Sequence record: NC_019408.1
DNA length: 64,000 nt
Reading direction: 5' to 3' (one strand)
Of this stretch, positions 20,107-57,114 are shown piece after piece. The notes below the pieces were generated by a model. That model was not told where the DNA came from. It was given only the letters and a program-made list of their open reading frames with translations, and ran no database searches. Both the position numbers and the translations under genes were made by a program. Each line of letters starts with the position of its first letter. Position 1 is the first letter of the stretch.

Positions 20107-20145
20107 GTCGTGAATCTTGACAACCGCACGTTAACCATGCCATTT
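20107..20145 (+). promoter_or_regulatory. GTCGTGAATC-TTGACA promoter upstream of the portal gene
   Basis: Conserved 16-mer; TTAACCAT in the spacer; -10 element weak. Confidence 0.65.
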
Positions 20146-20230
20146 TCCGGCTCACCTGCCTCATCCGGCGGGCTTCCCACGTCAAACTTCGGGGAGGATT
20201 CGTCCTCCCCGCCTCTTTCTCGGGCGCCGA

Positions 20231-22138
20231 ATGGCCGGTCAGACTCCGAACTCCACGAACATCTCGCGGGTCGCCCGCGCGACCTCGCAGGCGATCTATC
20301 TGGTCACCCATCCCGAGTACCAATACTGGCGCCCGGAGTGGACGAAGCTGCGCGACGTGATGGCGGGGCAGCGCGAGATCAAGCGCAAGGCCGAAGCCTA
20401 CCTGCCGGCCATGAAGGGCGCGGACGGCGACGACTACGCCATCTACCTCCAGCGCGCGACCTTCTTCAACATGCTGGCCCAGACCCGCGACGGCATGACC
20501 GGGATGGTCTTCCGCCGCGACCCGATCGTCAAGAACCTGCCGCCCAAGTTCAAGGACGCCGTGCGGCGCTTCGCCAAGGACGGCTCCTCGCACGCGACGT
20601 TCGCCAAGGCCGTGCTGTCCGAGCAGGCCGGCGTCGGCCGCTTCGGCGTCCTGGTCGACGTGGTCGACAACCCGCGCAAGGGCGCGGTCGCAACCAGCTT
20701 CGCCGTCGGCTACTCGGCCGAGAACATCCTCGACTGGGACGAAGTCGTCGACATGGGCGGCTTCTACGTCCCCAGCCGCGTGCTGCTGCGCGAATTCGTC
20801 CGCGACCTGCGCTGGAAGTCCGACATCGAGCCTCTGACCACCGCCCAGGCCCGCAAGGCGCGCGCGGCGGCCCTGGCCTCGGGTAGCGCCAGCAGCCCGA
20901 TGGTCCGTCAGACCGCCCGCACCCTGGGCGGCTACAGCTACATCACCGTCTACCGCGAACTCAAGCTCGAAGAGATCGAGTGGCCGTCCGGCGAGGTCAA
21001 GCTCGCCTACGTCCAGTACCTCTACGAAGAGGACCCCGAGAGCCGGCCGATCGCCCGCATCGTCCCGACCGTCCGGGGCGAGCCGCTCGACTTCATCCCC
21101 TTCAAGTTCTTCGGCGCCTCGGGCAACACCGCCGACGTCGAAAAGCCGCCGCTGCTCGACATCTGCGATCTGAACCTGTCGCACTACCGCACCTACGCCG
21201 AACTCGAATACGGCCGCCTGTTCACCGCCCTGCCGGTCTACTACGCGCCGGGCACCGACAGCGAGGGCACGGGCGAATACCACATCGGCCCGAACATGGT
21301 CTGGGAAGTCCCGCAGGGCTCCGAGCCGGGCATCCTCGAATACACGGGCCAGGGCCTGAAGGCGCTCGAAACCGCCCTCAACGACAAGGAGCGGCAGATC
21401 GCCGCGATCGGCGGCCGGATGATGCCGGGCGCCTCCAAGTCGGTCTCCGAGAGCAACAACCAGACCGTCCTTCGCGAGGCCAACGAGCAGTCGCTGCTCC
21501 TCAACATCATCCAGGCCTGCGAGTCCGGCATGACCGACGTCGTGCGCTGGTGGCTGATGTGGCGCGACGTGCCGCTGGCCGACACCGAGAACCTGCGCTA
21601 CGAGGTCAACACTGACTTCCTGTCGACGCCGATCGGCGCGCGCGAGATGCGCGCCATCCAGCTTATGGCCAACGACGGTCTGCTGCCCGACCCGGTCTTC
21701 TACGAGTACATGCGCAAGGCCGAGGTCATCTCGTCCGACATGACCTTCGAGGAATTCCAGGCCCTGCGCGCCGACGAGAACTCGTTCATCAACAACCCCG
21801 ACGCCCAGGCCCGCCAGCGCGGTTACACCAACCGTGGCCAGGAACTGGAGCAGTCGCGCATGGCGCGCGAAGCCGACTTCACCCAGCAGAAGATCGACAT
21901 CCAGGAGCGCAGCGTCGCGGTCCAGGAAGGTCACGCCGAGGTGGCGCACGCCGCCGGCTCGACCTCGATCTCCGGCTCGCGCAAGCTGGGCGACCCCGAG
22001 CAGGCCAAGCCCGCCGTGGCCGATCAGGCAACCATCGACAACGCCAAGAAGCAGACGGCGAACGCGGCGAAGGTCGCCGCCCAGCCGCCGGCTCCGGCCG
22101 CGCCGGGCGCTCCGCCCACCAATCGTCGCCCGACCTGA
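20231..22138 (+). CDS. Portal protein
   Basis: HPEY..WRPEW.K.RD, YLP, YL.RA.FFN and PPLLDI..LN.SHYR motifs of DUF4055-type portals; position in the head module. Confidence 0.88.
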   Translation: MAGQTPNSTNISRVARATSQAIYLVTHPEYQYWRPEWTKLRDVMAGQREIKRKAEAYLPAMKGADGDDYAIYLQRATFFNMLAQTRDGMTGMVFRRDPIVKNLPPKFKDAVRRFAKDGSSHATFAKAVLSEQAGVGRFGVLVDVVDNPRKGAVATSFAVGYSAENILDWDEVVDMGGFYVPSRVLLREFVRDLRWKSDIEPLTTAQARKARAAALASGSASSPMVRQTARTLGGYSYITVYRELKLEEIEWPSGEVKLAYVQYLYEEDPESRPIARIVPTVRGEPLDFIPFKFFGASGNTADVEKPPLLDICDLNLSHYRTYAELEYGRLFTALPVYYAPGTDSEGTGEYHIGPNMVWEVPQGSEPGILEYTGQGLKALETALNDKERQIAAIGGRMMPGASKSVSESNNQTVLREANEQSLLLNIIQACESGMTDVVRWWLMWRDVPLADTENLRYEVNTDFLSTPIGAREMRAIQLMANDGLLPDPVFYEYMRKAEVISSDMTFEEFQALRADENSFINNPDAQARQRGYTNRGQELEQSRMAREADFTQQKIDIQERSVAVQEGHAEVAHAAGSTSISGSRKLGDPEQAKPAVADQATIDNAKKQTANAAKVAAQPPAPAAPGAPPTNRRPT

Positions 22139-22164
22139 TGACCATCCAGCAAGCCTGAGTTCAG

Positions 22165-22347
22165 ATGCCGCGTTCCTACGATTCCTTCGAAGACCTGATC
22201 CATGACCTCGACCACGAGGGGATCGTCGACGCTGACGGCATCGCCGAACTGGACGACGAGGACCTGTCCTTGCTCGCCCCGCCGGTGATCCGCAAGGCCC
22301 CCGCCGCCCCGGCCAAGAAGCGCGGGCGCCCGAAGAAAGCGGCCTGA
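22165..22347 (+). CDS. Acidic protein with an AT-hook-like tail
   Basis: C-terminal KKRGRPKK. Confidence 0.65.
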   Translation: MPRSYDSFEDLIHDLDHEGIVDADGIAELDDEDLSLLAPPVIRKAPAAPAKKRGRPKKAA

Positions 22348-22772
22348 TGCGCCACGCCACCGCCTGCTGGAACGTCCTGACCGTCCGCCTGGACGGCATC
22401 GCCCACTGGGTCGACGAGGTCGACGTCTCCATCATCGACCTGGAGACGGGCGAGCACCCGCGCGGCGACGACGGCGTGTTCCTGCCGATCCTGTCGGCCA
22501 CCGAGACGACCATCAACCTCTACGGCGGTCAGACCATCGACGGCCGCTACGAGATCACCTCCAGCCTGCCCGAGGCTTCCATGACCGACCCCGTCCTGAT
22601 CGGCGACCCCGCCGCCGAGCGCACCATCGAAGTCCTGGCCCTGCACCCCGACGAGGCCGCCGAGTTCGTGCCCTCGCCCGAGCAGGCCGCCAAGATCGCG
22701 GCCGGCGACATGATCATCGGCATCATCCGCTACGCCATGCCCGAGGACCTGGAGCAAATCCTCACGTCGTGA
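22347..22772 (+). CDS. Hypothetical protein
   Basis: TGATG overlap. Confidence 0.7.
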   Translation: MRHATACWNVLTVRLDGIAHWVDEVDVSIIDLETGEHPRGDDGVFLPILSATETTINLYGGQTIDGRYEITSSLPEASMTDPVLIGDPAAERTIEVLALHPDEAAEFVPSPEQAAKIAAGDMIIGIIRYAMPEDLEQILTS

Positions 22773-22804
22773 ATCTTGACACCCAGAGTCAGGTGTGATG
22801 ACAT
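22766..22804 (+). promoter_or_regulatory. GTCGTGAATC-TTGACA promoter
   Basis: 16-mer; N17; TGACAT -10; CGTTAACCA downstream. Confidence 0.7.
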
Positions 22805-22832
22805 CGCCCTCGTTAACCACGAGGGCTTTTTC

Positions 22833-23093
22833 ATGACCACCGCCGTCTCCATCACCGCTGCCGGTCACAACCTCATCGTCTACCTGAACGATGCCTACGA
22901 GCCCTCGAACGGCGGCGAACTGGTCGAGACCGAGACCATCGAGTTCGTGACCAAGAGCACCCAGCGCACCTTCCACGTCCACCAGACGCGCGACCTCTAC
23001 GTCACCGAGGTCCGCGATGGCGAGACCGATCTCAACGGCCTGATCGACGCCGGCGACTTCGACGCCGCGCGCGCGTACATCCAGGCCGGCTAA
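22833..23093 (+). CDS. Hypothetical protein
   Basis: Downstream of a promoter. Confidence 0.7.
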   Translation: MTTAVSITAAGHNLIVYLNDAYEPSNGGELVETETIEFVTKSTQRTFHVHQTRDLYVTEVRDGETDLNGLIDAGDFDAARAYIQAG

Positions 23094-23279
23094 AGTTCTA
23101 CGGCGCCCTAATTGCCAGCCGGCGCATACGGACACGGGCTGGATAAATCGGCAGCGATGCGAAGCGCTTGGGGCGAGGGGCCACGGGCGTGAGTCACAGG
23201 AGGGGGCGCCGCTGGGTCACCGGCCCGGTCCTTTCACCTCCCAATCGCCGCAAGTCCGCACCCTTCCAAGAGGCCCTCG

Positions 23280-23918
23280 ATGAGCGACGATTTCGACAAG
23301 CAGTTCGACGACAAGGTCCGCGCGCGTGACGCCGCCGCCGTCGACGAGCAGCTTCGCCTTGCCCTGCCCGAGCCGGGCGTCTCCAGCAAGACGGTGGCGG
23401 AGTTGATTCAGCGCATCGCCCTGGGGCAGAGCGGGGAAGTCATCTTCGAGGTGAACGATCCGCCCTACGAGGCCGAGGTCGAACAGGCCGTGGAGATCGA
23501 GACCGCCCAGCGCCGCGACGGCAAGCCGGACGCGGTCTTCACCGAGCAGGACTACCTCGACCAGTCGGTCGACAAGTGCGCGGCCAAGTTCCTCGACACG
23601 CCGCTGGGCGGCCTGCCGTTCAAGCCGACGCCGGACGGCAAGGGCTACGTCTACGCGCGCGAGTTGGCCGGGCAAGCGGCGCCCAAGATCACGATCTCGG
23701 TCTACCTCAACAACGGCACGGTCCGCGAGTACGACGTCGCCGACGCGGCGACCGCGCGCGAGCATGCCTTCGAGATCATCCAGACCGGCTACCGCAGCGT
23801 CGACCAGGATGCGCCCAACGTGCTCGTCCACTGGCCGCCGCACGAGATCAAGAAGGTCAAGCTGACCGCCAGCGAGCCGCTCAAAACCACCTACTTCGAC
23901 CGCGTCCGGGGGACCTGA
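23280..23918 (+). CDS. Hypothetical protein
   Basis: GAGG RBS; 212 aa. Confidence 0.75.
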   Translation: MSDDFDKQFDDKVRARDAAAVDEQLRLALPEPGVSSKTVAELIQRIALGQSGEVIFEVNDPPYEAEVEQAVEIETAQRRDGKPDAVFTEQDYLDQSVDKCAAKFLDTPLGGLPFKPTPDGKGYVYARELAGQAAPKITISVYLNNGTVREYDVADAATAREHAFEIIQTGYRSVDQDAPNVLVHWPPHEIKKVKLTASEPLKTTYFDRVRGT

Positions 23919-23921
23919 CCC

Positions 23922-24314
23922 ATGCCCACCATCCAATTTGATTCGATCGGCCTCGTGCCGGAAGGCCTTCGTGCATATGCCAAGGTCGCCGGCGACTACG
24001 AAGGTGAAGCCGTCTCGGTCGACGTCGTGCCGGCCGTCAGGATCGACGAATTCCGCGAAGCCAACATCCGCCTGGGCAAGGAGCGCGACGAGCTTGCCGA
24101 GCGCCTCGTCCAGGCTGACCGCCACGCCCAGGCCCTGGCCCAGGAACTCGTCGAGGCCGACGAGCGCATCCAGGTCCTTACCGACGATCTGGCTGCGAGC
24201 ACCCGGCAGACGACGGTCCTGGCGGAATACATCGACGCCAACATCGATCTCGAAGCCGTGCGCAGCCATGTCAACGAGGTGATCATGATCGTCGACACCT
24301 GCGTCGAGGCCTGA
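23922..24314 (+). CDS. Paralog of the scaffold protein N-terminus plus coiled coil
   Basis: VPEGLR...VVPA..IDEFR..NI...KERD.L.ERL is shared with 31200-31991. Confidence 0.8.
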   Translation: MPTIQFDSIGLVPEGLRAYAKVAGDYEGEAVSVDVVPAVRIDEFREANIRLGKERDELAERLVQADRHAQALAQELVEADERIQVLTDDLAASTRQTTVLAEYIDANIDLEAVRSHVNEVIMIVDTCVEA

Positions 24315-24316
24315 TC

Positions 24317-24682
24317 ATGTGCGTCGTCTCCGCCGTTATGGATCACGGCCGCCAGCAGTGGCCTGATCTGATGGAGCCCAAGTTCTGGCCGCTCCCCACC
24401 CCGGTCGTCCCGGCGCATCCGGGCATGAAGCTCTGGCCGCCGCAGGAGCCCAAGCTCCCGACCAAGGCGGAGATCGAAGCGTTCCTGGCGCTCTACAAGG
24501 CCGCCCAGGAATACGACGCCAAGACCGGCCAGCCGCACTGCGAGGACCCCGAGAAGATCAAGCTCCTCGACGCCATCAACCGGCTCGCCGATCGCCTGGA
24601 GGCGATTGAAAAGCGCCTCGGCGCCCAGGACGCGGCAGAGGCCGAGGACGCGGCGGCGATCGCCGCCTCCGTCAAGACGTGA
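24317..24682 (+). CDS. Hypothetical protein
   Basis: MCVVSAVMDH...YDAKTGQPHCEDPEK motifs. Confidence 0.75.
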   Translation: MCVVSAVMDHGRQQWPDLMEPKFWPLPTPVVPAHPGMKLWPPQEPKLPTKAEIEAFLALYKAAQEYDAKTGQPHCEDPEKIKLLDAINRLADRLEAIEKRLGAQDAAEAEDAAAIAASVKT

Positions 24683-24927
24683 GCGTCTTCGACCTGCCGG
24701 CCGACGGCTTTGACCGCCGCAAGCCGCTCTTCCGCGTCTTCGACATCGACGGCGAGACCCAGTGGTGGACGGTGATCGCCGCGCTCAACGCGCCCGGCCG
24801 CCGCTGCACCCCCGAGGAGGAAGCGCGGATCGTCGAGCGCCTCCAGGCCAAGTCCTGGGCCGACAAGTTCTGGACCTGCTACCACCTGAGCGGCAAGGCC
24901 ACCATCTACGAAAGCACCCCGGAATGA
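24679..24927 (+). CDS. Hypothetical protein
   Basis: Start/stop overlaps. Confidence 0.6.
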   Translation: MSVFDLPADGFDRRKPLFRVFDIDGETQWWTVIAALNAPGRRCTPEEEARIVERLQAKSWADKFWTCYHLSGKATIYESTPE

Positions 24928-25208
24928 AGCTGACCATCAGCGGCCAGGACATGAGTGGCGAGGCCACCGTCTATTTGATGCTGGTCCCGCGCGCGGGCGT
25001 GCGCATGCAGAATGACGTGCCCGTCGCCCTCACCTTCGAGGCTCTGCCGGGCGCGGCCGGCGATGTGCGCCTGGACGCCATGACCGAGGTCTCCCTGTCG
25101 GACGCGCCGCCGCCGGGCACGCTCGTCTTCCTGCCGGGGGAGGCCGAGAAGGTCTTCTTCATCAACACCGCCGGCCCGTGGAAGCTCACGTTCCGGGAGA
25201 CGCCGTGA
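24924..25208 (+). CDS. Hypothetical protein
   Basis: Start/stop overlaps. Confidence 0.6.
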   Translation: MKLTISGQDMSGEATVYLMLVPRAGVRMQNDVPVALTFEALPGAAGDVRLDAMTEVSLSDAPPPGTLVFLPGEAEKVFFINTAGPWKLTFRETP

Positions 25209-25444
25209 ACGCCAACCAGCACATGCCCGACAACATGCCGTTCGGCCTCAAGGGGTTCCCCAAGGTCGAGCGGATCGACGGCGTGCGCAACATCGTCTAC
25301 CTGACCTGCGGCGACAGCGTGCCGATCGTCCACTACATGGCGGGCGGCGAGGAGTGCGGCAATCCGCTGCGGGCCGACACCCTGGTCGCCGGCCCCTATC
25401 AGGACAAGTGGCTGGTCCTGCCGATCCCGGACGGCGCCCTGTGA
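25205..25444 (+). CDS. Hypothetical protein
   Basis: Start/stop overlaps. Confidence 0.6.
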   Translation: MNANQHMPDNMPFGLKGFPKVERIDGVRNIVYLTCGDSVPIVHYMAGGEECGNPLRADTLVAGPYQDKWLVLPIPDGAL

Positions 25445-25683
25445 CCCGGCCGCTCAACGCCACCGAGGTCCTCTGCGACGCCTTCCGCGACCTTTTGACC
25501 AAGGGCTTCTACGTCACCGACGAGCACGGCGAGGTTCACGGACCGGGCACCCCGCTGGGCGATGCGGCCCTGGCGGCGACCAAGGCGTGGCGCGGCGACC
25601 TGTGGAAGGCCTTCCGCCCGATCGACGACAGCATGTGCCCGGTGCGGGTTCACGAGCGCGAAGCGGCCAAGCGCGCGGGCTGA
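25441..25683 (+). CDS. Hypothetical protein
   Basis: Start/stop overlaps. Confidence 0.6.
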   Translation: MTRPLNATEVLCDAFRDLLTKGFYVTDEHGEVHGPGTPLGDAALAATKAWRGDLWKAFRPIDDSMCPVRVHEREAAKRAG

Positions 25684-25684
25684 A

Positions 25685-25835
25685 CATGTCCGGATATGTC
25701 CGGATTTGGCCGGCAAATGTCCGGCAAGCACCACCGCTCATTGATTTCATTGAACTTTTAGTCTCGACCGGTGTCCAGCAAATGTCCGGCAATGGCCGGA
25801 TTAAGGTTTGGCCGGATGACCGGATCGCCGGCCGG
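25685..25835. repeat. ATGTCCGG / TGGCCGG short-repeat patch
   Basis: ATGTCCGG x4 and TGGCCGG x3 in an intergenic stretch. Confidence 0.7.
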
Positions 25836-25848
25836 TTTCGAAAGTGGT

Positions 25849-25887
25849 GTCGTGATTCTTGACACCCCATGTCGTCTGTGGTGACAT
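25849..25887 (+). promoter_or_regulatory. GTCGTGATTC-TTGACA promoter
   Basis: Variant that keeps GANTC; TGACAT -10; CGTTAACCA downstream. Confidence 0.7.
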
Positions 25888-25915
25888 CCCCTCGTTAACC
25901 ACGACGGGCTCTCCG

Positions 25916-26257
25916 ATGATCCGCCTGACCCAGACCAAGCACATGAGCAACGAGGCCTCCAGCGACCAGCGTTGGTTCCTCGACCACACCCTGCGGTTCG
26001 AGGTGCATCCGATCCGCAACGAGGCCCAGGTCAAGGCTTGGCCGGGTGCCAGGGCGGCGGTCGTGGTCCACGGCGAAGCCCACTACGTCGACGAGACGCC
26101 CGAGCAGGTCATGTCTCTGCTGAAGGTCGTGCGCCATCCGCACGCCTACCGGCTTCAGGACGAAGCAGGTCACCTGATCGCGCCGGACGATCTGATCTGG
26201 ATCGGCATGGACGGCGAGGGCGTCCTGGAATTCGGTCTGACCGAGATCAAGGGGTAG
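25916..26257 (+). CDS. Hypothetical protein
   Basis: VDETPEQV motif. Confidence 0.65.
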   Translation: MIRLTQTKHMSNEASSDQRWFLDHTLRFEVHPIRNEAQVKAWPGARAAVVVHGEAHYVDETPEQVMSLLKVVRHPHAYRLQDEAGHLIAPDDLIWIGMDGEGVLEFGLTEIKG

Positions 26258-26260
26258 GCC

Positions 26261-26941
26261 ATGACCTTCAATCTCGTCAACCAGCGCGAGTACGAGGCGC
26301 TGACCTACGCCAAGATCGTGGCCGACGGCGGCGTGCTGGCGGAGAGCGAGGTCAGGGTCCTGGCCAACGCCCTGCTGCGCGAGGAAGCGCGCTACGAGGA
26401 CCGGCGCCTTGCCTTCATGCACCCGTCGATCCTCTGCGCGAACGGCGAGTATTACGACTTCACCAACCCGGACGCCTTCTCCTGGGACATCCAGGTGATC
26501 GCCGCCGGCCTGCGCGCGCCGCGCTTCACGGCCCAGACCCGCAGCAAGGGCACCTACTCGATCGCCCAGCACTCGCTTCTGGCCAGCTACATCGTGCCCA
26601 AGGGCTTCGAACTGGAGGCCCTGCTGCATGACGCTCAGGAGAGCGTGCTGGGCGACAAGGCCACGCCGTTCAAAATCCTGCTGCCCGACTACAAGCACTA
26701 CGAGGACATCGCCGAGGCCTCCGTGCGGCGCCGGTACGGCCTGCCGCCGACGATGAGCCCGGAGGTCAAGCACGCCGACCTCGTCATGCTCGCCACCGAG
26801 AAGCGCGACATCATGCCCAACCCCGAGGACGAGTGGGCGATGCTCAAGGGCGTCGAGACCCTGCCCTTCGAGATCGAGGTCTGGGACGTCGAGCGCGCCC
26901 GCGACGCCTTCATCGCCCGCTTCGCCGACCTGACGGCCTGA
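26261..26941 (+). CDS. HD-domain phosphohydrolase (YfbR-like 5'-deoxynucleotidase)
   Basis: RF.AQ...YSIAQHS...ALLHDAQE..LGD...P.K...VKHADLVMLATE.RD. Confidence 0.85.
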   Translation: MTFNLVNQREYEALTYAKIVADGGVLAESEVRVLANALLREEARYEDRRLAFMHPSILCANGEYYDFTNPDAFSWDIQVIAAGLRAPRFTAQTRSKGTYSIAQHSLLASYIVPKGFELEALLHDAQESVLGDKATPFKILLPDYKHYEDIAEASVRRRYGLPPTMSPEVKHADLVMLATEKRDIMPNPEDEWAMLKGVETLPFEIEVWDVERARDAFIARFADLTA

Positions 26942-26973
26942 CGTCCGCTCCTGACGTAGAACGATACGAGAAC

Positions 26974-31053: not shown

Positions 31054-31092
31054 GTCGTGAATCTTGACATTCCACGAATTTTTTGCTAGAAC
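31054..31092 (+). promoter_or_regulatory. GTCGTGAATC-TTGACA promoter for the scaffold/capsid genes
   Basis: TTGACA-N17-TAGAAC; GCTAGAAC matches the Caulobacter sigma70 -10 consensus GCTANAWC. Confidence 0.8.
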
Positions 31093-33743: not shown

Positions 33744-33777
33744 AAACCCCGGACCTCGCGGTCCGGGGTTTTTCTTT
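33744..33777 (+). terminator. Intrinsic terminator
   Basis: AAACCCCGGACC-TCGC-GGTCCGGGGTTT followed by TTCTTT. Confidence 0.85.
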
Positions 33778-33804: not shown

Positions 33805-33843
33805 GTCGTGAATCTTGACACAAGGCCCGTTTCATGCCAGAAG
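33805..33843 (+). promoter_or_regulatory. GTCGTGAATC-TTGACA promoter
   Basis: 16-mer immediately after the terminator. Confidence 0.7.
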
Positions 33844-47976: not shown

Positions 47977-48081
47977 TGGGGAGAGCCGGGTGGGGCTTTG
48001 TATCGCTGGGGGAGCGAGGGACGGGCCGCTCCCCGGCGGCCCACCCGCTCTTTATAGACGGCCCTTTCCCGGCCCGCAAGA

Positions 48082-48118
48082 CGTGAATCTTGACATGGTG
48101 GAAGATCGGGGTTAACCT
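48082..48118 (+). promoter_or_regulatory. CGTGAATC-TTGACA promoter
   Basis: TTGACA-N17-TAACCT. Confidence 0.75.
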
Positions 48119-49243: not shown

Positions 49244-49318
49244 GGTGCCGTCGTATATGGGTTATTATCACCGGCTGTCTCCCGGTGGAAACGGGTTCGA
49301 GTCCCGTCGGCATCGCCA
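49244..49318 (+). tRNA. tRNA-Asp(GTC)
   Basis: ACCGG-CTGTCTC-CCGGT. Confidence 0.9.
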
Positions 49319-49651: not shown

Positions 49652-49744
49652 ATGGACTGTCACGGATCACGACACTCCTCGGAGTGCAAAAGCGTGATCC
49701 TTCGTTTTTCACGGCCGCCAGCGGGTGGCCAGTCGAGAGTTGTC

Positions 49745-50156: not shown

Positions 50157-50161
50157 ACAAC

Positions 50162-50234
50162 GCTGTTGCGCGTGGCTTCGCGCCCACCCCTTGGTATGGG
50201 GCGGTAGAAGGTTCAATTCCTTCCAGCAGCACCA
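50162..50234 (+). tRNA. tRNA-Thr(GGT), reduced D-arm
   Basis: CCCC-TTGGTAT-GGGG; GCTGTTG/CAGCAGC acceptor. Confidence 0.75.
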
Positions 50235-50451: not shown

Positions 50452-50456
50452 ACAAT

Positions 50457-50546: not shown

Positions 50547-50549
50547 TGT

Positions 50550-50636: not shown

Positions 50637-50643
50637 ACGACAT

Positions 50644-50731
50644 GCCTTGCTGGCGGAAGTGGTAGACGCACTGTTCTCAAAAAGCAGGCCGGGCGACCGG
50701 GCTCTGGGTTCGATCCCCAGGTGAGGCACCA
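50644..50731 (+). tRNA. tRNA-Leu(CAA)
   Basis: CTGTT-CTCAAAA-AGCAG. Confidence 0.9.
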
Positions 50732-50738
50732 AGACTGA

Positions 50739-50826
50739 TGCGAAGTGGCGGAAACTGGTAGACGCACCGGCATGAGAGGCCGGCGCCCTTCGGGGCGTGA
50801 GGGTTCGAGTCCCTTCTTCGCGACCA
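50739..50826 (+). tRNA. tRNA-Leu(GAG)
   Basis: CCGGC-ATGAGAG-GCCGG. Confidence 0.88.
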
Positions 50827-50906
50827 ATGTCCCGATCGGGAAGATTCCAGGCGGCGCGGCGCTCGCGACACCCGGATTTTCCCGATCGGGAAGACGACGA
50901 GATTAT

Positions 50907-50977
50907 GCTGATCGCCGCTGGGCGGGGAGCGGGTTGTGTCCCCGCTAGGCACGGTTCGATCCCGTGGGTCAGTACCA
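50907..50977 (+). tRNA. tRNA-His(GTG), compact, no G-1, A73
   Basis: AGCGGG-TTGTGTC-CCCGCT; absence of G-1 matches the Caulobacter-type tRNA-His. Confidence 0.75.
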
Positions 50978-50982
50978 GATAC

Positions 50983-51053
50983 GGGGTATGCGCAGGGCGC
51001 AGGCATCCTTTGCAAGGAAGTCGGGGTGGGTTCGAGTCCCACATACTCCACCA
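50983..51053 (+). tRNA. tRNA-Ala(TGC), compact D-arm
   Basis: CATCC-TTTGCAA-GGAAG; GGGGTAT/ATACTCC acceptor includes G3-U70. Confidence 0.75.
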
Positions 51054-51057
51054 ACAT

Positions 51058-51147
51058 GGAAGGTCAACCGGACAGGCGCGCCGGGACTGCCTCGAAAGCA
51101 GATCGCACTCTCCGGGGTGTGGGGATCGAGACCTCGGCCTTCCTCCA
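51058..51147 (+). tRNA. tRNA-Ser(CGA)
   Basis: CTGC-CTCGAAA-GCAG; long variable arm. Confidence 0.88.
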
Positions 51148-51151
51148 ATAT

Positions 51152-51241
51152 GGTGAGCGAACGGGACAGGCGTGCCCGGTCCGCCTGGAAAGCGCGACGC
51201 ACTCTCCGGGGTGTGGGATTCGAGTTCTCCGCTCACCGCCA
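51152..51241 (+). tRNA. tRNA-Ser(GGA)
   Basis: CGC-CTGGAAA-GCG; long variable arm. Confidence 0.88.
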
Positions 51242-51245
51242 ACAG

Positions 51246-51336
51246 GGTAGGCGAACCGGACAGGCGCGCCGGCGCCGTTTGCTAAACGAGCGGCACTCTC
51301 CGGGGGTGTGGGATTCAAGCTCTCCGCCTACCGCCA
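51246..51336 (+). tRNA. tRNA-Ser(GCT)
   Basis: CGT-TTGCTAA-ACG; long variable arm. Confidence 0.88.
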
Positions 51337-51612
51337 TTTTGATGTTGACGCCGGCCAGCACCGATGTCATACGTCACGACAGAGCCAACGCCCTCGGCCG
51401 GGTTGGTGGATGTGCCGGTTGCATCGCGCCCCGTCGAGCCCTAGTAGCTCTTGCCGTGGAGTTTTCCGCCTCCCTCCCAGACAAGGAGGCGGACCCCTAC
51501 ATCGCGATCCAGTGATCGTCGGCGACGGGCGCCGTCAGAGCCCCTTGCGCGCGGGAACGCTGCGGAGGGGATCGTCCCGACCACATTTTTCGACCCACGT
51601 TAACTTTTCTTC

Positions 51613-51641
51613 TTGACCTTCCCGAAAACGTAGTGTAGCTT
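51613..51641 (+). promoter_or_regulatory. Sigma70-type promoter P3
   Basis: TTGACC-N17-TAGCTT; predicted start site about 51648, so the ATG is leaderless. Confidence 0.75.
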
Positions 51642-51648
51642 TCCCGTC

Positions 51649-51744
51649 ATGAGCAAGTCGTACCGTCAATTCGTGCAGATTCAGGTCGTCCGGAATTTCC
51701 GGGCGGGCCGTTCGCGCATGGATGATGGCGGGACCTTTATCTAG
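51649..51744 (+). CDS. Leader peptide of tRNA array B (31 aa)
   Basis: Codons 5-18 (YRQFVQIQVVRNFR) are all read by tRNAs of the downstream array. Confidence 0.8.
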   Translation: MSKSYRQFVQIQVVRNFRAGRSRMDDGGTFI

Positions 51745-51770
51745 GTCCAGACACCTCAACCCAATTCGCG

Positions 51771-51810
51771 AAAGGCCCGCCTGGACACCCAGGCGGGCCT
51801 TTTTCTTTTT
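51771..51810 (+). terminator. Attenuator terminator before array B
   Basis: AAAGGCCCGCCTGG-ACAC-CCAGGCGGGCCTTT followed by TTCTTTTT. Confidence 0.9.
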
Positions 51811-51867
51811 CCGTTTCGCTGATCCGCAGGAGATCGCAGATGAACAACGGGGGCTAGTCCTCCACAT

Positions 51868-51952
51868 GGATGCTTAAAGCTGGAGGGCTCCAGCCGGGGG
51901 CTGTAAACCCCCTCTCTTCGGAGGAGTGGTTCGATCCCACAAGCATCCACCA
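51868..51952 (+). tRNA. tRNA-Tyr(GTA)
   Basis: GGGGG-CTGTAAA-CCCCC; long variable arm. Confidence 0.88.
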
Positions 51953-51957
51953 ATCAT

Positions 51958-52033
51958 GGACTCGTAGCTCAGCAGGTAGAGCGCCGGCTTGAAACCCCGG
52001 AGGTCGGAGGTTCGATTCCTCCCGTTTCCACCA
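51958..52033 (+). tRNA. tRNA-Phe(GAA)
   Basis: Canonical spacing gives loop TTGAAAC; C31-C39 mismatch. Confidence 0.85.
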
Positions 52034-52038
52034 ACAAC

Positions 52039-52114
52039 GCCCGATGAGCCAGATGGGAAGGCACCGCTTTGACATGGCGGCATTGAGAAGGTTCGATTCC
52101 TTCATCAGGCACCA
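52039..52114 (+). tRNA. tRNA-Val(GAC)
   Basis: CCGCT-TTGACAT-GGCGG. Confidence 0.88.
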
Positions 52115-52119
52115 ACCAC

Positions 52120-52195
52120 GCAAGTGTAGCTCAGTTGGTAGAGCAGCGGACCGATAATCCGCCCGTCCCTGGTTCGAGTCCAGGCATTTGCACCA
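52120..52195 (+). tRNA. tRNA-Ile(GAT)
   Basis: GCGGA-CCGATAA-TCCGC (C33). Confidence 0.88.
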
Positions 52196-52202
52196 TTTCT
52201 GA

Positions 52203-52278
52203 TGTGGCATAGCTCAGGGGTCAGAGCGCGCGCTTGATAAGCGTGAGGTCGGTGGTTCGAGACCACCTGTCACTACCA
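52203..52278 (+). tRNA. tRNA-Ile(GAT)
   Basis: CGCGC-TTGATAA-GCGTG. Confidence 0.88.
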
Positions 52279-52312
52279 ATTCCCAGGCCCGGTGGAGATG
52301 CGCCGGTTCTGT

Positions 52313-52386
52313 AGGCGATTAGCTCAATGGTAGAGCAGGGGTGCCACATACCTCGGTCGTAGGTTCGATTCCTACATCGCCCACCA
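52313..52386 (+). tRNA. tRNA-Val(CAC), atypical G32/C33
   Basis: GGGGT-GCCACAT-ACCTC. Confidence 0.78.
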
Positions 52387-52392
52387 ACATGT

Positions 52393-52466
52393 TGAGGGTT
52401 CGTCTAACGGTAGGACGCCTGGGTCTGGTCCAGGTAATCTAGGTTCGAGTCCTAGCCCCTCATCCA
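52393..52466 (+). tRNA. tRNA-Gln(CTG)
   Basis: CCTGG-GTCTGGT-CCAGG. Confidence 0.88.
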
Positions 52467-52472
52467 AGTTGT

Positions 52473-52547
52473 TCTCGGGTCGTCTAATGGTAAGACATCT
52501 GGTTTTGGTCCAGAGGATTGGGGTTCGATTCCTTGGCCGAGAGCCAA
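52473..52547 (+). tRNA. tRNA-Gln(TTG)
   Basis: TCTGG-TTTTGGT-CCAGA. Confidence 0.88.
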
Positions 52548-52563
52548 CTGCTTTAGAGTTCAT

Positions 52564-52637
52564 TCCAGTCAATGCACAAGGTGTGCAGCGGCACTGTTAA
52601 TGCCTGTGAGCCCGGTTCGATTCCGGGGTCTGGAGCC
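52564..52637 (+). tRNA. tRNA-Asn(GTT)
   Basis: GGCA-CTGTTAA-TGCC. Confidence 0.88.
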
Positions 52638-52663
52638 AACACGCCGGCCAAGGCCGGTCATGC

Positions 52664-52746
52664 GCCCTGGTAACCGAGGGGGATTACGAATCCCTTAGTC
52701 GTAGCAGGAGTTGAAAAGGGTGGTTCGAATCCACTCCAGGGTGCCA
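52664..52746 (+). tRNA. tRNA-Arg(ACG)-like, no D-arm, long variable region
   Basis: GCCCTGG/CCAGGGT acceptor; GGGA-TTACGAA-TCCC; intact T-arm and CCA. Confidence 0.6.
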
Positions 52747-52753
52747 AATCTAT

Positions 52754-52836
52754 AGCGCGCAGGCCGATCAGGATCATCGTCAGGCGTCGCCCTCCGAAGG
52801 CGAAGAGGCCCGGTTCGAGTCCGGGGCGCGCTGCCA
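52754..52836 (+). tRNA. tRNA-Arg(CCG), enlarged D-loop
   Basis: TCGCC-CTCCGAA-GGCGA. Confidence 0.8.
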
Positions 52837-52839
52837 ACT

Positions 52840-52917
52840 GCGCGGGTAGCTCAACGGAACCAGAGCAGCCGTCTTCTACACGGTGGGTTGGGGGTTCGAG
52901 TCCCTCCCCGTGCGCCA
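52840..52917 (+). tRNA. tRNA-Arg(TCT)
   Basis: GCCGT-CTTCTAC-ACGGT. Confidence 0.88.
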
Positions 52918-53254
52918 AAACTTGACGGGCAATGCCGAATCGCCCAACTTCGACCCTGGCTCTCGGTGGGCCACGATTGCACGCCGTCGGTGCCCTGGCC
53001 GTACACCCAGGGAGCAGCCCGGCGGCGTTCCAACACGGTTTCTGGACGATCTTCGAACGCGGCTTGCCGTGGAGGGGTGCTGGATAGGGCCGAGGTAGGA
53101 GGAACCATCGAGCATCTCCTAATCCCGGCCTGGGCCTCCTGGGGGCTCCGCTGGGTCGATCAGGGCCTGACCCGACCCCGGAGATGCGCCGACCTAGATC
53201 ACCCAGGATCGCTGGGTCGGTTGAAAGGGTCTGAAATTTTCTGGCTCCTATGTG

Positions 53255-53285
53255 TTGACACGCATTTCGGAGCCGGCTACAACCC
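53255..53285 (+). promoter_or_regulatory. Sigma70 promoter with no downstream ORF
   Basis: TTGACA-N17-TACAAC (GCTACAAC). Confidence 0.7.
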
Positions 53286-53424
53286 TCCTCGTAGAGCGGC
53301 GCTGGGGCCTGAAGGCCCCAATCGTTGAGCCTCTGCGTTGTCGTCAGAAACGGCCCGCCGGCATCCCGCCGCGCGGGCCGTTTCGTCATGGGCGTCATGC
53401 GACCTTGAGTCCACCGTGGGTAGT

Positions 53425-53463
53425 GTCGTGAATCTTGACTTTCGACCACCTTTCCGGTAGCTT
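53425..53463 (+). promoter_or_regulatory. GTCGTGAATC-TTGACT promoter
   Basis: N17 then TAGCTT. Confidence 0.75.
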
Positions 53464-53508
53464 CCCCTTCATCACCAACGCTCATAAGTCGGGGACTAGA
53501 GAGCCGAT

Positions 53509-53907
53509 ATGTCGCAAGACCACACCGGCTCCGCAACGCAGAGCCAAGAACACATCTTTCGTAAGCTGGATGAGCTTGGCGCAATGCACATGCGTACCCG
53601 CGAGGACATGGCCGAAGTCAAGGAGAAGGTGAAGACCATCGCCTCCTCTCAGGAGCGCTTTGAGCGCGACGTTTGGCGCGAGATGGACATTCGCCACGCC
53701 GAGACCAAGGAGCAACTGGCCGCCATCAAGAATCAAACCGCCGATCGGATCGACGAGATCGAGGCCAAGGTGAACACCATTCGCGAGGAGCGGATCGCCG
53801 AAAAAGCCCAGTGGCGTGGCCCCGAGAAGGTCATTGCCGGCATCGTCGCCCTGGCGGGCGGCGTCACCGCGATCGGCGTTCTCTGGAGCATCTTCAAACC
53901 CCACTAA
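53509..53907 (+). CDS. Coiled-coil protein with a C-terminal transmembrane helix
   Basis: Helical body; IAGIVALAGGVTAIGVLWSIF. Confidence 0.7.
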   Translation: MSQDHTGSATQSQEHIFRKLDELGAMHMRTREDMAEVKEKVKTIASSQERFERDVWREMDIRHAETKEQLAAIKNQTADRIDEIEAKVNTIREERIAEKAQWRGPEKVIAGIVALAGGVTAIGVLWSIFKPH

Positions 53908-53941
53908 GCCTACAGTCAAGCTTGTTCGCCTGCGGCCAGAA

Positions 53942-53982
53942 GTCGCGGTTCTTGACACCCCCCAGCGGCCCGAGCTAACCAT
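53942..53982 (+). promoter_or_regulatory. Variant promoter GTCGCGGTTC-TTGACA
   Basis: GCTAACCAT -10; GANTC absent. Confidence 0.55.
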
Positions 53983-54012
53983 AGGGTCATCTGTTCCTGG
54001 GGAGTTTCCTAG

Positions 54013-54234
54013 ATGGCTGCTGCGCTTACCCTCGTCTCCTGCGAGACGAACTTTTCGACCACCACGGACACCGATCCGGACGCGGCGCACGAGCGCCTCA
54101 TTCTGGTCCTCAACACCGCCTCAGAAGCGGGCCTTGGTGAAATGACGTTGGAAGTCAAAGAAGAGATCGAGGCCCTGCTCAAGCAGGCGTCTATCGAACT
54201 CTCGAACTGCCGGATCGTGGGGGGAGTTCCTTAA
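54013..54234 (+). CDS. Hypothetical protein
   Basis: GGAG RBS. Confidence 0.6.
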   Translation: MAAALTLVSCETNFSTTTDTDPDAAHERLILVLNTASEAGLGEMTLEVKEEIEALLKQASIELSNCRIVGGVP

Positions 54235-54256
54235 TCGCCATCCCAGAGGGAGCGAC

Positions 54257-55123
54257 GTGTCCGAGTCTTCCGAATTCAACCCGCTCGACCAATCCCAGTT
54301 CCCTCCTCGCCTCACCAAGGCTGCTGCGCGTCAGGCGCGGCGCCAGGAGCGCAGCCAGAAAAAGGACCCCACGGCGAACAAGCCCAACTACAAGGCGCTC
54401 GAAGCCAAGACTGAACGCCAGAAGCGCTACATCCAGGCGCTGAAGGCCGGCGAGAGCGCCATCGCCATCGGCGGGGCCGGCACGGGGAAGACCTACATCC
54501 CGTCCCGGCTCTTCGCCAAGAAGCTGATCGAAGGCAAGACCGAACGCCTGATCATCGCCCGCGTCACCGCCTCGCGGGCCAAGCACGCCCTGGGCTTCCT
54601 GCCCGGCAAGCTCGAAGCCAAGCTGGCCCCGTGGCTGGTGCCGGTGATCGAGGGCGTCAAGGCGGAAATGAACGCCCAGACCTATACGCAGTTGCAGGAG
54701 GCCGGCAAGATCGAGTTCGCCTCCTTCGAGCACATGCGCGGCCGGACCTTCGGCGAGTGCTGCGTCCTGCTGGACGAGGCCCAGAACGCCGACTACAAGG
54801 ACCTGAAGATGGTCCTGACCCGTTGGGGTGAGAACGCCCAGTACGCGGTCACCGGCGACGTCGACCAGATCGACGTGGACGACTCCGGGCTGGACACGGT
54901 CATCGACATCGTCGAGGCCAACGACATCCCCATCCACGTCATCGAGTTCACCGACGAAGACGTCGTGCGCTCGCCCATGGCCAAGGCCTGGGTCAAGGCC
55001 TTCTCCGCCCACGAGGGCAAGGACGGCCGGCCCCGGCGCTTCCACCGCCCGGCTGTCAGGAATCTTGACGCTTTGCCGGCGTTCATCGATAATGGCCATG
55101 TCACGAAACCCGTGGCATCGTGA
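54257..55123 (+). CDS. phoH: PhoH-family ATPase
   Basis: GGAGTGKT Walker A; LGFLPG.L..KL.PW; MRGRTF; LLDEAQN; LTRWGE; GDVDQID. Confidence 0.93.
   Translation: MSESSEFNPLDQSQFPPRLTKAAARQARRQERSQKKDPTANKPNYKALEAKTERQKRYIQALKAGESAIAIGGAGTGKTYIPSRLFAKKLIEGKTERLIIARVTASRAKHALGFLPGKLEAKLAPWLVPVIEGVKAEMNAQTYTQLQEAGKIEFASFEHMRGRTFGECCVLLDEAQNADYKDLKMVLTRWGENAQYAVTGDVDQIDVDDSGLDTVIDIVEANDIPIHVIEFTDEDVVRSPMAKAWVKAFSAHEGKDGRPRRFHRPAVRNLDALPAFIDNGHVTKPVAS
55055..55093 (+). promoter_or_regulatory. GTCAGGAATC-TTGACG promoter inside the phoH 3' end
   Basis: N17 then GATAAT. Confidence 0.6.
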
Positions 55124-55124
55124 C
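55100..55124. promoter_or_regulatory. GTCAC-N15-GTGAC operator-like palindrome
   Basis: GTCACGAAACCCGTGGCATCGTGAC. Confidence 0.55.
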
Positions 55125-55140
55125 AAAGACGTAGAGCACC

Positions 55141-55662
55141 ATGGCCTTCACCTTCGTTGTTGAGACCGGCGCCGGCGACCCGGCCGCGAACTCGTACTGC
55201 GACGTGCAGTTCGCGGACGACTACATCTACGCCAACGTCTACTCGAACACCGCCTGGGCCGCCTTGGAGGACGAGGACAAGGAACGCTTCCTGGTCCGCG
55301 CCTCCAAGTACCTGGACCGGACGGTGCAATGGGCGGGGGAGAAGATCGAGGAGGACTCCGGCCTGCGCTGGCCGCGCGCCGGGGTCTATGACGTCGACGG
55401 CTTCCTGATCCCCAGCGACGCCATCCCGCAGCAGTTGATGGAGGCCACCGCCGAAATGGCGGCGGCGCTCCTCAACAACGACTGGACCTCGCCGCAGACC
55501 ACGCGCGGCATGAAGGAAATCCAGGTCGACGTCATCGAACTGAAGTTCGACACCGAGGTCCAGCGCGGCTCGATGCCGGACATCGTCATGCAAATCCTGG
55601 AGGGCCTGGGCGTGGTCAAGACCGGCCAGCGCCCGGCCTTCAAGAAGATCATCCGGCACTAA
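55141..55662 (+). CDS. Head-tail connector/adaptor protein
   Basis: VETGAG..AANSY..V..AD.Y...A..YLD...W.G.......L.WPR.G family motif. Confidence 0.75.
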   Translation: MAFTFVVETGAGDPAANSYCDVQFADDYIYANVYSNTAWAALEDEDKERFLVRASKYLDRTVQWAGEKIEEDSGLRWPRAGVYDVDGFLIPSDAIPQQLMEATAEMAAALLNNDWTSPQTTRGMKEIQVDVIELKFDTEVQRGSMPDIVMQILEGLGVVKTGQRPAFKKIIRH

Positions 55663-56054
55663 TGGCGCTCGAAGCGTTCATCCAGTCGCAGGTCCTGGTT
55701 GCCTTCAACCAGCTTGACGACCTCTGCAAGCGCTGGACCTATGTCCAGCGTTCGGGGACTGGCGTGCGCGACGTCGAGAGCGGCAAGACCGTCTACCCCA
55801 CGACCGAGATCGACATCCCCAAGGCCGTGCGGGTGCGCTTCAAGAAGGACGAGAAGGACAAGACCGGGCAGGTCCTGGTCGGCGAGAAGCTCCTCTTCCC
55901 GCGCGTCTACCTGCCCAAGGGCTTCGAGACCAAGACGTCCGACTACCTCATCGACGAGGCGGACGTGATCTGGGAGATCATGAGCGACCTGTCGGACCCG
56001 GCCAAGGCCGTGGCGATCCTCCAGGTGCGCACCTCCCGGATCGTGACGCCGTGA
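55662..56054 (+). CDS. Putative head closure protein
   Basis: Position and size. Confidence 0.55.
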   Translation: MALEAFIQSQVLVAFNQLDDLCKRWTYVQRSGTGVRDVESGKTVYPTTEIDIPKAVRVRFKKDEKDKTGQVLVGEKLLFPRVYLPKGFETKTSDYLIDEADVIWEIMSDLSDPAKAVAILQVRTSRIVTP

Positions 56055-56524
56055 AGGTAGGCGGCGCCAAGCTCAACTTCTACACCGACGGGAACCTGGA
56101 GGCGGCGTTCAAGCGCTTCTTCGCCACCGCCGAGAAGCGTTACGACGAGCGCGCCGACCGGTTGCTGATCCGGCTGAACGAACTGATCCTCTCGCGCACC
56201 CCGGTGTGGGAGGGCGACACGATCCACAACTGGCGCTGGTCGACCCGCGCGCCGGACATGCGTCACGAAGACCCGATCGGCGGCGTCGACCCTGGCCGCA
56301 CCAACGACATGCCCCTGGGCGTGGAGCCCCGGCGCCGCGCCAACGAGGCCCGCCCCCGCCAGTCGCTGGCCGGCGCGCTGCGGGCCAAGGAGCCGATCGA
56401 CATCTACCTGACCAACACCGCCGAGAGCGCGGTCGATCTCGAATACGGGCTGCTGCCGACCAAGGCCCAGAGCCGTAACAGCATGGGGATGGTCCGAATC
56501 TCGGTTAAAGAGGTGTTCGGGTGA
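56051..56524 (+). CDS. Putative neck/tail completion protein
   Basis: RTPVWEG....NW; IYLTN...AVDLEYG (HK97 gp10-like). Confidence 0.65.
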   Translation: MKVGGAKLNFYTDGNLEAAFKRFFATAEKRYDERADRLLIRLNELILSRTPVWEGDTIHNWRWSTRAPDMRHEDPIGGVDPGRTNDMPLGVEPRRRANEARPRQSLAGALRAKEPIDIYLTNTAESAVDLEYGLLPTKAQSRNSMGMVRISVKEVFG

Positions 56525-56595
56525 TCCCCGCGTTCATCATTCTGCCGCGCGTCTATCTCGCGGCGTGGGTTTCGTTCTGGCTCGGGGAGGACTAG

Positions 56596-57051
56596 ATGCT
56601 CGAACACGACATGCTCCGTCAAGTCCTGGAACAGCAGGCGCTCGCCGCCGCCGTCCTGGCCAACCTCGACCTGAAGTTCGACAACTCCCAGTTCGTCCAG
56701 CCGACCGACGGACGCCACTGGGCGGAGTTCTGGCACAAGACCGGCGCGACCAAGGCCTGCGAGGTCGCTGGGCCGAAGGGCTATGAGAAGACCGCTGGGC
56801 TGCTGCAATTCACCCTCAAGGCCCCCGAGGAGGAAGGCAACGGCGCGATCATCCGCGCCGGCGGTCTCGTCAAGCGGGCGCTGAACCGCAAGCAGTTGGT
56901 GATCCCGCCCGACGGCTGGGTCACGCTCGATCCGATCTCGGTCGACATGCACGGCAAGCCGATCGACGGCTTCTTCAACGTCATCGTCTGGGCGACGTTC
57001 GACTTCTACCACCGCGATCCCGACGCGCCCGATCACTGGCTCCGGGGTTGA
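56596..57051 (+). CDS. Putative tail terminator
   Basis: Precedes the tail tube gene; GLLQFTLKAP..EG motif. Confidence 0.65.
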   Translation: MLEHDMLRQVLEQQALAAAVLANLDLKFDNSQFVQPTDGRHWAEFWHKTGATKACEVAGPKGYEKTAGLLQFTLKAPEEEGNGAIIRAGGLVKRALNRKQLVIPPDGWVTLDPISVDMHGKPIDGFFNVIVWATFDFYHRDPDAPDHWLRG

Positions 57052-57075
57052 CGGCGGAGCTTCACGGCTGCTATA

Positions 57076-57114
57076 GTCGTGAATCTTGACATTCCGCGAA
57101 GTCTAGGGTAGGTT
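57076..57114 (+). promoter_or_regulatory. GTCGTGAATC-TTGACA promoter for the tail tube gene
   Basis: N17 then TAGGTT. Confidence 0.78.

Follow-up and report, generated by a model that had tools for sequence, protein, structure and literature searches.

A dispersed class of predicted promoters with a pseudo-palindromic block fused to the -35 box in Caulobacter phage CcrRogue

A 64,000-nucleotide stretch of phage DNA, here called the window, carries a repeated motif in which a conserved upstream block, usually containing the pentamer GANTC, runs directly into a -35 box. The window corresponds to bases 1-64000 of Caulobacter phage CcrRogue (NC_019408.1 / JX100814.1, 223,720 bp, Dolichocephalovirinae) with 100% identity and identical coordinates, and genome-wide counts were obtained by joining it to the remainder of the public record. 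The reading we prefer, to which we assign a probability of roughly 0.45 from the sequence evidence, is that the sites are strong promoters for the host sigma factor and that a 17-bp pseudo-palindrome within them serves as the operator of a dimeric regulator made by the phage, with the repressor-like protein gp326 as the candidate. The sites themselves, their layout, their conservation, and their spread over the genome are observed; promoter activity, operator function, and the identity of the factor are what we infer. The first-pass annotation of the window had instead proposed that host CcrM methylates GANTC, that host GcrA then activates late genes, and that a CtrA-dependent early phase precedes this one. 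Such a cascade acting through host proteins is not supported, and the GANTC sequence most likely arises incidentally, where an outer block that ends in G meets the AATC before the -35 box.

A search with the 16-mer GTCGTGAATCTTGACA on both strands, allowing up to three mismatches and using 100 shuffled sequences as control, found 11 matches in the window against 0.24 expected, a number that none of the shuffles reached. Ten of the matches are on the plus strand and are listed, with their mismatches, in Table 1; the eleventh, at 49658 on the minus strand, lacks TTGAC and is probably a chance match. The positions given in the first-pass annotation agree with this search, except that 48082 is corrected to 48080, and the motif does lie, as was said there, upstream of portal, scaffold/capsid, tRNA, head, and tail genes in the RefSeq annotation, from which all gene assignments of sites are taken. 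The range of 20107 to 57114 holds within the window, but the class reaches further. The CcrRogue genome has 24 sites in total, every one of them co-oriented with the next gene. The 14 sites past the window fall into two stretches, 66.5-118 kb and 206-208 kb, on the plus strand at 66582, 72724, 78560, 80663, 103513, 115226, 118008, 206094, and 207927, and on the minus strand at 87046, 88001, 94208, 101429, and 109201. The same genome-wide count found no class site in the first 20 kb and none in an 88 kb block of small genes at 118-206 kb.

When the 24 sites are aligned, information content is high at motif positions 0-17, with a second rise at positions 32-39. All but one of the sites (23 of 24) have TTGAC, and a -10-like element follows 17 nt past TTGACA in most sites, as previously noted, its second base being A in 17 sites and its last base T in 15. 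This second block follows the pattern G-(C/G)-(T/C)-A-N-N-W-(T/C); examples are GCTAGAAC at 31054, which is the exact Caulobacter RpoD -10 consensus, and GCTATCTT at 87046. The published RpoD consensus in Caulobacter has -35 TTGaCgS and -10 GCtANAWC, 10-19 bp apart, and the class sites agree with it, their -10 element beginning 14 bp past the 7-base -35 consensus. An E. coli-type promoter scan detects just one of the ten window sites, because the -10 boxes, weak by E. coli standards, obey the Caulobacter pattern. What distinguishes the class from Caulobacter RpoD (sigma73) promoters is the additional, invariant 10-bp upstream block. Setting the -10 hexamer at -12 to -7 places TTGACA at -35 to -30 and GANTC at -40 to -36, and since the -10 occupies motif positions 34-39, the start site predicted from it, computed rather than mapped, falls near position 46.

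Comparison of ten orthologous sites in CcrRogue and phiCbK gives 98% identity in the motif, 85% in the -10 element, 74% in the spacer, 73% downstream, and 45% in the 40 nt upstream. The functional unit therefore starts at the left edge of the motif. Because a consensus -35 box, the right spacing to a Caulobacter-type -10 element, co-orientation with genes, and a sharp phylogenetic footprint all coincide, the class sites are very probably promoters. About 24 strong promoters would thus be read by host RNA polymerase carrying the housekeeping sigma factor (RpoD/sigma73), with TTGACA serving as the -35 box and the GCtANAWC-like element as the -10 box.

The genes headed by the class do not fit a late programme. 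Beyond portal, scaffold/capsid, head-completion, and tail units, the motif heads lysis and terminase units, but it also heads the ribonucleotide reductase unit (87046), gp320 (88001), a Pol III-like exonuclease (94208), the methyltransferase gp308 (101429), and a helicase (109201). Within the window, the gp057 operon is a nucleotide-metabolism unit under a class motif, and the phages Karma and BL10 have the exact motif at matching positions of their replication modules. In the part of the published phiCbK expression data that we draw on, replication genes belong to the early phase, and structural and lysis genes to the middle or late one. Since the motif stands on both kinds of unit, the motif alone sets no timing, and the class is not late-specific, contrary to the earlier suggestion. 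The predicted promoters would head most of the replication and nucleotide-metabolism, head, tail, tRNA, lysis, and terminase units in CcrRogue and its relatives.

The conserved block and the -35 box, written T-GTCGT-GAATC-TTGAC-A, form a 17-bp pseudo-palindrome in which six of eight pairs are symmetric, the symmetry reaching T at position 0 (16 of 24 sites) and A at position 16 (19 of 24). The full palindrome GTCGTGANTCACGAC, with up to one mismatch, occurs twice in the genome against 0.1 expected, and GTCGT-N5-ACGAC occurs six times against 1.0 expected, with other spacings yielding 0-3. The palindromes at 98219, 98241, and 140630, each in or close to another promoter-like region, are conserved in phiCbK, and the first two also in BL57; the palindrome at 19813 and the half-site at 19835 are likewise retained in phiCbK. 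The arms of the 98219, 98241, and 140630 copies are almost fully conserved among Rogue, phiCbK, and BL57, the one exception being a base of the 98241 copy in BL57, and the centre of that copy varies. Fixed arms around a free centre are expected of a dimer that reads the arms, not of a reader of GANTC. In the mechanism we propose, the ten upstream bases and the -35 box would form an operator for a phage-encoded, dimeric helix-turn-helix regulator that contacts the outer arms, and the A/T-rich centre that spells GANTC would not be a specific contact. The right arm is the -35 box, so the simplest effect of binding would be competition with sigma region 4, and occupancy of the operator would gate, by repression, the entire replication and morphogenesis programme. 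The bound factor could also act as an activator.

Related phages show which part of the architecture is general and which is not. Common to all lineages is WWTC followed by a perfect TTGACA -35 box. The block GTCGTG precedes it in Rogue, phiCbK, and BL57, which infect Caulobacter (the BL57 block is Rogue-like), and in Bajun, which infects Brevundimonas. Expressed as class sites containing GANTC over all class sites in each phage, Bajun, whose portal protein is 68% identical, has ACGTCG before the -35 box in 14 sites and GANTC in 7/14. Colossus and CcrPW have (t)GCCAG(G/A/T)WWTC-TTGACA, with GANTC in 2/7 and 2/5, respectively; CcrSC has G(A/C)CGCATTTC-TTGACA and GANTC in 0/6; and Gurke has mainly WWWTC-TTGACA and GANTC in 1/4. 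Colossus and CcrPW, both of which infect strain CB15, carry GCCAG, whereas CcrSC, which also infects CB15, carries G(A/C)CGC. An outer block that differs among phages of a single host strain and is held in common across host genera suggests a reader encoded by the phage, and the comparison suggests that the block tracks phage lineage rather than host. The open literature that was searched yielded no earlier account of the motif. A 15-mer scan of IMG/VR found multiple copies only in Rogue, BL10, and Karma, with single chance matches elsewhere, and among the matches listed in a 16-mer scan of bacterial genomes there were single chance matches.

The best candidate for reading the predicted operator is gp326 (81030-81821, minus strand, outside the window), an XRE-type helix-turn-helix protein. 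By profile, its family resembles the repressors P22 C2, 434 Cro/CI, and lambda CI, with a further, weak match to the C-terminal domain of LexA. Each of the 49 Dolichocephalovirinae records has the gene, invariably behind that for dUTPase, and the putative recognition helix of the protein varies among lineages. Close relatives of Rogue persist as episomal pseudolysogens, a state that would need silencing of the repressor kind. The region upstream of gp326 lacks the class motif. A distinct control region is found there instead (81822-82008), with a block of about 20 nt that is identical in Rogue, Karma, and the distant Bajun, and with a hairpin after it in Rogue and Karma.

Several points weigh against this interpretation. 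The choice of gp326 comes from just two kinds of evidence, phyletic pattern and fold family, and the pseudolysogen study reports no superinfection immunity, counter to what a classical repressor would confer. The promoter sites themselves have no more than the six symmetric pairs, their right arm is constrained by the -35 box anyway, and a match of five of seven mirrored bases would arise by chance with a probability of about 0.013 (binomial estimate). Little symmetry is seen in the upstream blocks of CcrSC and Gurke. The palindromes before the peptidase, C5-methylase, gp271, and RtcB genes lie 16-18 nt before minus-strand start codons and could be 5' RNA hairpins instead of DNA operators. Finally, the GANTC-bearing block co-occurs with a phage GcrA-like gene in one clade, which leaves room for a GcrA-like reader. 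Two further candidates were set aside: gp036, a small helix-turn-helix protein encoded in the window, is absent from the phiCbK group, whose motif is identical, and the XRE protein TgrL has a published matrix (core C-A-A-C/G-C; McLaughlin 2023) that by eye fits neither strand.

The nearest parallel to the proposed arrangement is the overlap of operators and promoters in lambdoid phages (CI/C2/Cro), where a pseudo-symmetric site of about 17 bp likewise covers the -35 box of strong promoters and the phage likewise encodes a CI/C2-like helix-turn-helix protein with a LexA-like C-terminal part. CcrRogue differs in having 24 copies dispersed over almost every replication and morphogenesis unit, instead of a single immunity region, and its operator is a prediction; the phage is described as lytic or pseudolysogenic, with superinfection immunity not reported. 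The middle promoters of phage T4 use MotA and AsiA together with an extra element near -35. They resemble the CcrRogue class in forming a phage-wide family with a conserved element at or near -35 that is used by host polymerase, but the CcrRogue class keeps a consensus -35 box rather than replacing it, and no MotA- or AsiA-like proteins were identified.

Some observations speak for control by host GcrA and CcrM, which would tie late genes to the cell cycle. GANTC is present in 21 of the 24 sites, and in nine of the ten in the window, so that host CcrM could methylate them; the pentamer is rarer in the genome than expected (272 versus 408), and about 21 of 22 occurrences of the context TGAATCT fall within the motif; and GcrA is a sigma70 cofactor that acts at methylated promoters (Haakonsen et al.). 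The resemblance to the GcrA/CcrM sigma70 promoters of Caulobacter crescentus (Haakonsen 2015; Wu 2023) extends to a sigma70-type promoter with GANTC and to a GcrA homologue encoded by the phage. The details are at odds with that resemblance. AGATTCA, the reverse complement of TGAATCT, ranks 32nd of the 32 NGANTCN contexts for GcrA, and Haakonsen et al. used it to cut GcrA affinity to the unmethylated level. Among the class sites, the favoured context YGAKTCK is fitted only by the 25849 variant, TGATTCT, which, as noted before, is still GANTC. A single change of N to T would create this consensus-like box, but N is A in 20 of the 24 sites, and its conservation (1.7 bits) equals that of the adjacent positions. 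GcrA boxes have been mapped to -20+/-1 or -30+/-2, both in the spacer, or to +5 to +30 (Haakonsen 2015; Wu 2023), the authors attributing the lack of boxes further out to the length of the GcrA linker, whereas the class GANTC is centred at about -38 relative to the predicted start. The phage class also differs in conserving N together with ten further bases and in having homologues in relatives, with the same architecture, in which GANTC is mostly lost. No CcrM-type enzyme is recognisable among CcrRogue proteins: gp311 methylates cytosine at C5 by its family, and gp308 matches nothing in Pfam or the PDB, its one hit being to a generic 'DNA methyltransferase' entry of PHROG. Murray et al. state in their text, on a spot test, that a gcrA deletion resists phiCbK, which they put down to low pilin, and that ccrM::Tn lessens this resistance; since phiCbK forms plaques on that combination, its cycle can finish without host GcrA and CcrM. 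Mascolo et al. found no positional signal for GcrA sites in these phages, and the class, as described above, is not late-specific. We consider the host GcrA/CcrM model very improbable, and context, position, and the retention of A at N speak against its claim that late genes respond to GcrA or methylation.

The GcrA-like protein of the phage itself is a different matter. That phiCbK-like phages carry a GcrA homologue was correctly stated in the first-pass annotation: gp204 matches Pfam GcrA with E=8e-21 and has both GcrA domains joined by a lysine-rich linker. If it is tethered to sigma domain 2, as host GcrA is, and has been retargeted to the box GTCGTGAATC abutting the -35 box, gp204 might activate the class, with or without sensitivity to adenine methylation, a reading we regard as unlikely though of some substance. 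Both of its domains align to the solved DNA-binding and sigma-interacting domains of GcrA, its gene lies within the motif-free block at 118-206 kb, which is compatible with earlier expression, the -10 boxes are weak by the E. coli measure and GcrA stimulates open-complex formation, and a GAATC box is bound by GcrA in a complex solved by cryo-electron microscopy. GcrA-like genes are confined, moreover, to the clade with GTCGTG and AATC (Rogue, phiCbK, and BL57, plus a weak match of 27.5% identity in Bajun), and among the genomes compared, Colossus, CcrPW, CcrSC, and the Brevundimonas jumbo phages, which have other blocks, lack them. This co-occurrence with retained GANTC amounts to one evolutionary event, however, and relatives without GcrA keep a homologous promoter class, so the architecture does not need it. 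Bajun keeps ACGTCG while losing GANTC in half of its sites, the arm palindromes are conserved without GANTC, and a GcrA monomer on about 7 bp would leave the conserved GTCG and the T at position 0 unexplained. The -38 position lies upstream of all documented GcrA boxes, with the linker-length argument again applying, and the motif is the same in Rogue and phiCbK although their GcrA-like proteins share no more than 63% identity. A more specific version, which we judge quite doubtful, has gp204 retargeted from the host box to GTCGTGAATC against the -35 box, with the methylation of this GANTC, which would differ between injected DNA and copies made in a CcrM-less swarmer cell, tuning the whole replication and morphogenesis programme. 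If true, gp204 would be a virus-encoded sigma cofactor that reads an epigenetic mark at a new promoter position.

A dedicated factor may also be unnecessary, the block being an extended -35 or proximal UP-like element and timing being left to SciP/CtrA-type boxes, the quality of the -10 box, and terminators. WWTC immediately before a perfect TTGACA in all lineages, with little more than that in Gurke, agrees with this, as do the failure of the motif to separate temporal classes and the separate SciP/CtrA-type boxes in half of the promoters. But the G+C-rich outer block GTCG is conserved like the -35 box, at 1.2-2.1 bits per position, the block varies within one host strain and is common across host genera, and conserved arm palindromes exist away from -35 boxes. 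We therefore think this reading, too, improbable, without dismissing it.

A likelier link to the cell cycle than GcrA/CcrM, as far as sequence can indicate, is provided by the boxes of SciP/CtrA type. TTAAC boxes occur in 12 of the 24 class promoters (27 matches versus 1.7 expected), and outside the first 10.3 kb, 13 of 13 TTAACCAY boxes adjoin a GTCGTGA-type element. Several of these read GTTAACCATG, which matches the SciP consensus (G/A)TTAACCAT(A/G), a sequence containing half a CtrA box (Fumeaux 2014). The boxes overlap the spacer, the -10 element, or the predicted start site, an arrangement that suggests repression in swarmer cells. Full CtrA dyads, TTAA-N7-TTAA, number six in the genome, all at 3.3-9.5 kb (3323-9478) in the early region of the terminal repeat, and 51 of 98 TTAAC/GTTAA positions fall in the first 10 kb; published CtrA clusters lie in terminal repeats (Mascolo 2022), consistent with the six CcrRogue dyads. 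The class promoters thus resemble the CtrA/SciP promoters described for phiCbK-like phages (Mascolo 2022; Fumeaux 2014) in having SciP-consensus boxes, in 12 of 24 cases. The published sites, however, are full dyads clustered in the terminal repeat, whereas the class boxes are half-sites over the spacer, -10 element, or start of another promoter class. With such boxes inside half of the class promoters, the proposed order of CtrA early and GcrA late does not fit.

Phages of the phiCbK type are standard tools of the Caulobacter cell-cycle field, and descriptions of their promoters were not found in the literature searched. The analysis supplies a genome-wide map of about 24 probable starts of transcription units, a defined 17-bp control element, and two named candidate readers, the CI-like gp326 and the GcrA-like gp204. 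Operator, readers, and SciP/CtrA-type boxes could together explain how replication and morphogenesis are held back in 'lytic deferment' and episomal pseudolysogeny. The occurrence of GANTC in a Caulobacter phage promoter need not imply control by GcrA and CcrM.

Table 1. Predicted class promoters, palindromes, and SciP/CtrA-type boxes of CcrRogue. Mismatches are relative to the 16-mer.
Feature	Position	Strand	Remarks
Class promoter, portal gp046	20107..20145	+	exact copy; block and -35 at 20107-20122, -10 region at 20138-20145
GTTAACCATG box in spacer of portal gp046 promoter	20130-20139		
Class promoter, gp049	22766..22804	+	exact copy; overlaps final codons of gp048
Class promoter, gp057 operon (deoxynucleoside monophosphate phosphatase, HNH, DHH phosphoesterase, RNase H)	25849..25887	+	one mismatch; GATTC variant
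Class promoter, scaffold gp069 and major head protein	31054..31092	+	exact copy
Class promoter, gp072 through 2805-aa lectin-like gp078	33805..33843	+	exact copy
Class promoter, gp081 and tRNA cluster	48080..48118	+	one mismatch; begins GAC (GACGTG variant); -10 overlaps GTTAACC
Class promoter, gp348	53425..53463	+	one mismatch; ends TTGACT
Class promoter variant GTCGCGGTTC, gp347 and PhoH	53942..53980	+	three mismatches; GGTTC, without GANTC
Class promoter variant GTCAGGAATC, head-tail adaptor gp345	55055..55093	+	three mismatches; GANTC retained; TTGACG, -10 GATAAT
Class promoter, tail gene gp341	57076..57114	+	exact copy
Palindrome with TTAACCAT centre and TGTCAT/ATGACA arms, 17 bp	19813-19829		peptidase-portal intergenic region
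GTCGTGA half-site	19835 (19813..19850 region)		peptidase-portal intergenic region
Palindrome	98219 (98219-98255 region)		in spacer of minus-strand TTGACG box before C5-methylase gene
Palindrome	98241		just upstream of minus-strand TTGACG box before C5-methylase gene
Palindrome	134210		GTCGT/ACGAC arms, before gp271 start codon
Palindrome	140630		just after minus-strand TTGACA / -10-like pair before RtcB gene; without GANTC
SciP/CtrA-type boxes in the window	20130-20139, 22812-22821, 25894-25903, 48112-48118, 19817-19824		
SciP/CtrA-type boxes past the window	66637, 87017, 88027, 98206, 101414, 109161, 109230, 207908, 207965		

Some individual sites deserve comment. The GATTC of the 25849 site is retained in phiCbK and BL57, and the phiCbK orthologue of the 53942 site, like the CcrRogue site, lacks GANTC, as the first-pass annotation had observed for the latter. 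A strong terminator at 33744-33771 precedes the 33805 promoter, and the 55055 promoter, whose upstream block is Colossus-like, sits within the 3' end of PhoH. At the predicted start of the 22766 promoter lies a terminator-like hairpin (22806-22826) with TTAACCA in its loop and a T-run after it, the homologue of which is annotated as a terminator in phiCbK; a second hairpin with a TTAACCA loop lies at about 25888-25908, at the predicted start of the 25849 promoter. Both would stop the upstream operon but not transcripts starting within them. The annotated open reading frame (ORF) gp045 (19970-20164, minus strand) lies opposite the portal promoter and its upstream region and is probably no gene, and the 115226 promoter falls within the annotated 5' end of gp295 (115160-115519), whose annotated start is probably too far upstream.

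Following the lysis cassette, an orphan class promoter without GANTC (80663-80996) would give a transcript of about 330 nt in which no gene is annotated. A strong terminator hairpin closes this unit, which converges on the 3' end of the CI-like gene gp326, and no Rfam family scored above threshold on it. Outside the phages, a metagenome-assembled genome of Opitutaceae (JBDSSU01) has the 16-mer inside a longer repeat, AAGGGGTCAT followed by the motif, in at least eight copies, close variants counted, spread over three contigs. Immediately after one copy comes a 340-aa ORF that by eye, with no database search, resembles a REP-associated tyrosine transposase. There is no similarity to the phage, and the agreement with the motif is probably a coincidence. 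In the window, ARAGORN finds 24 tRNA genes compared with 20 in RefSeq; those unannotated in RefSeq are Thr(ggt), His(gtg), Ala(tgc), and Ile(aat), the loci being 50159-50234, 50907-50977, 50983-51053, and 52564-52638, and the gene at 49244-49318, labelled tRNA-OTHER in RefSeq, is called Asp(gtc).

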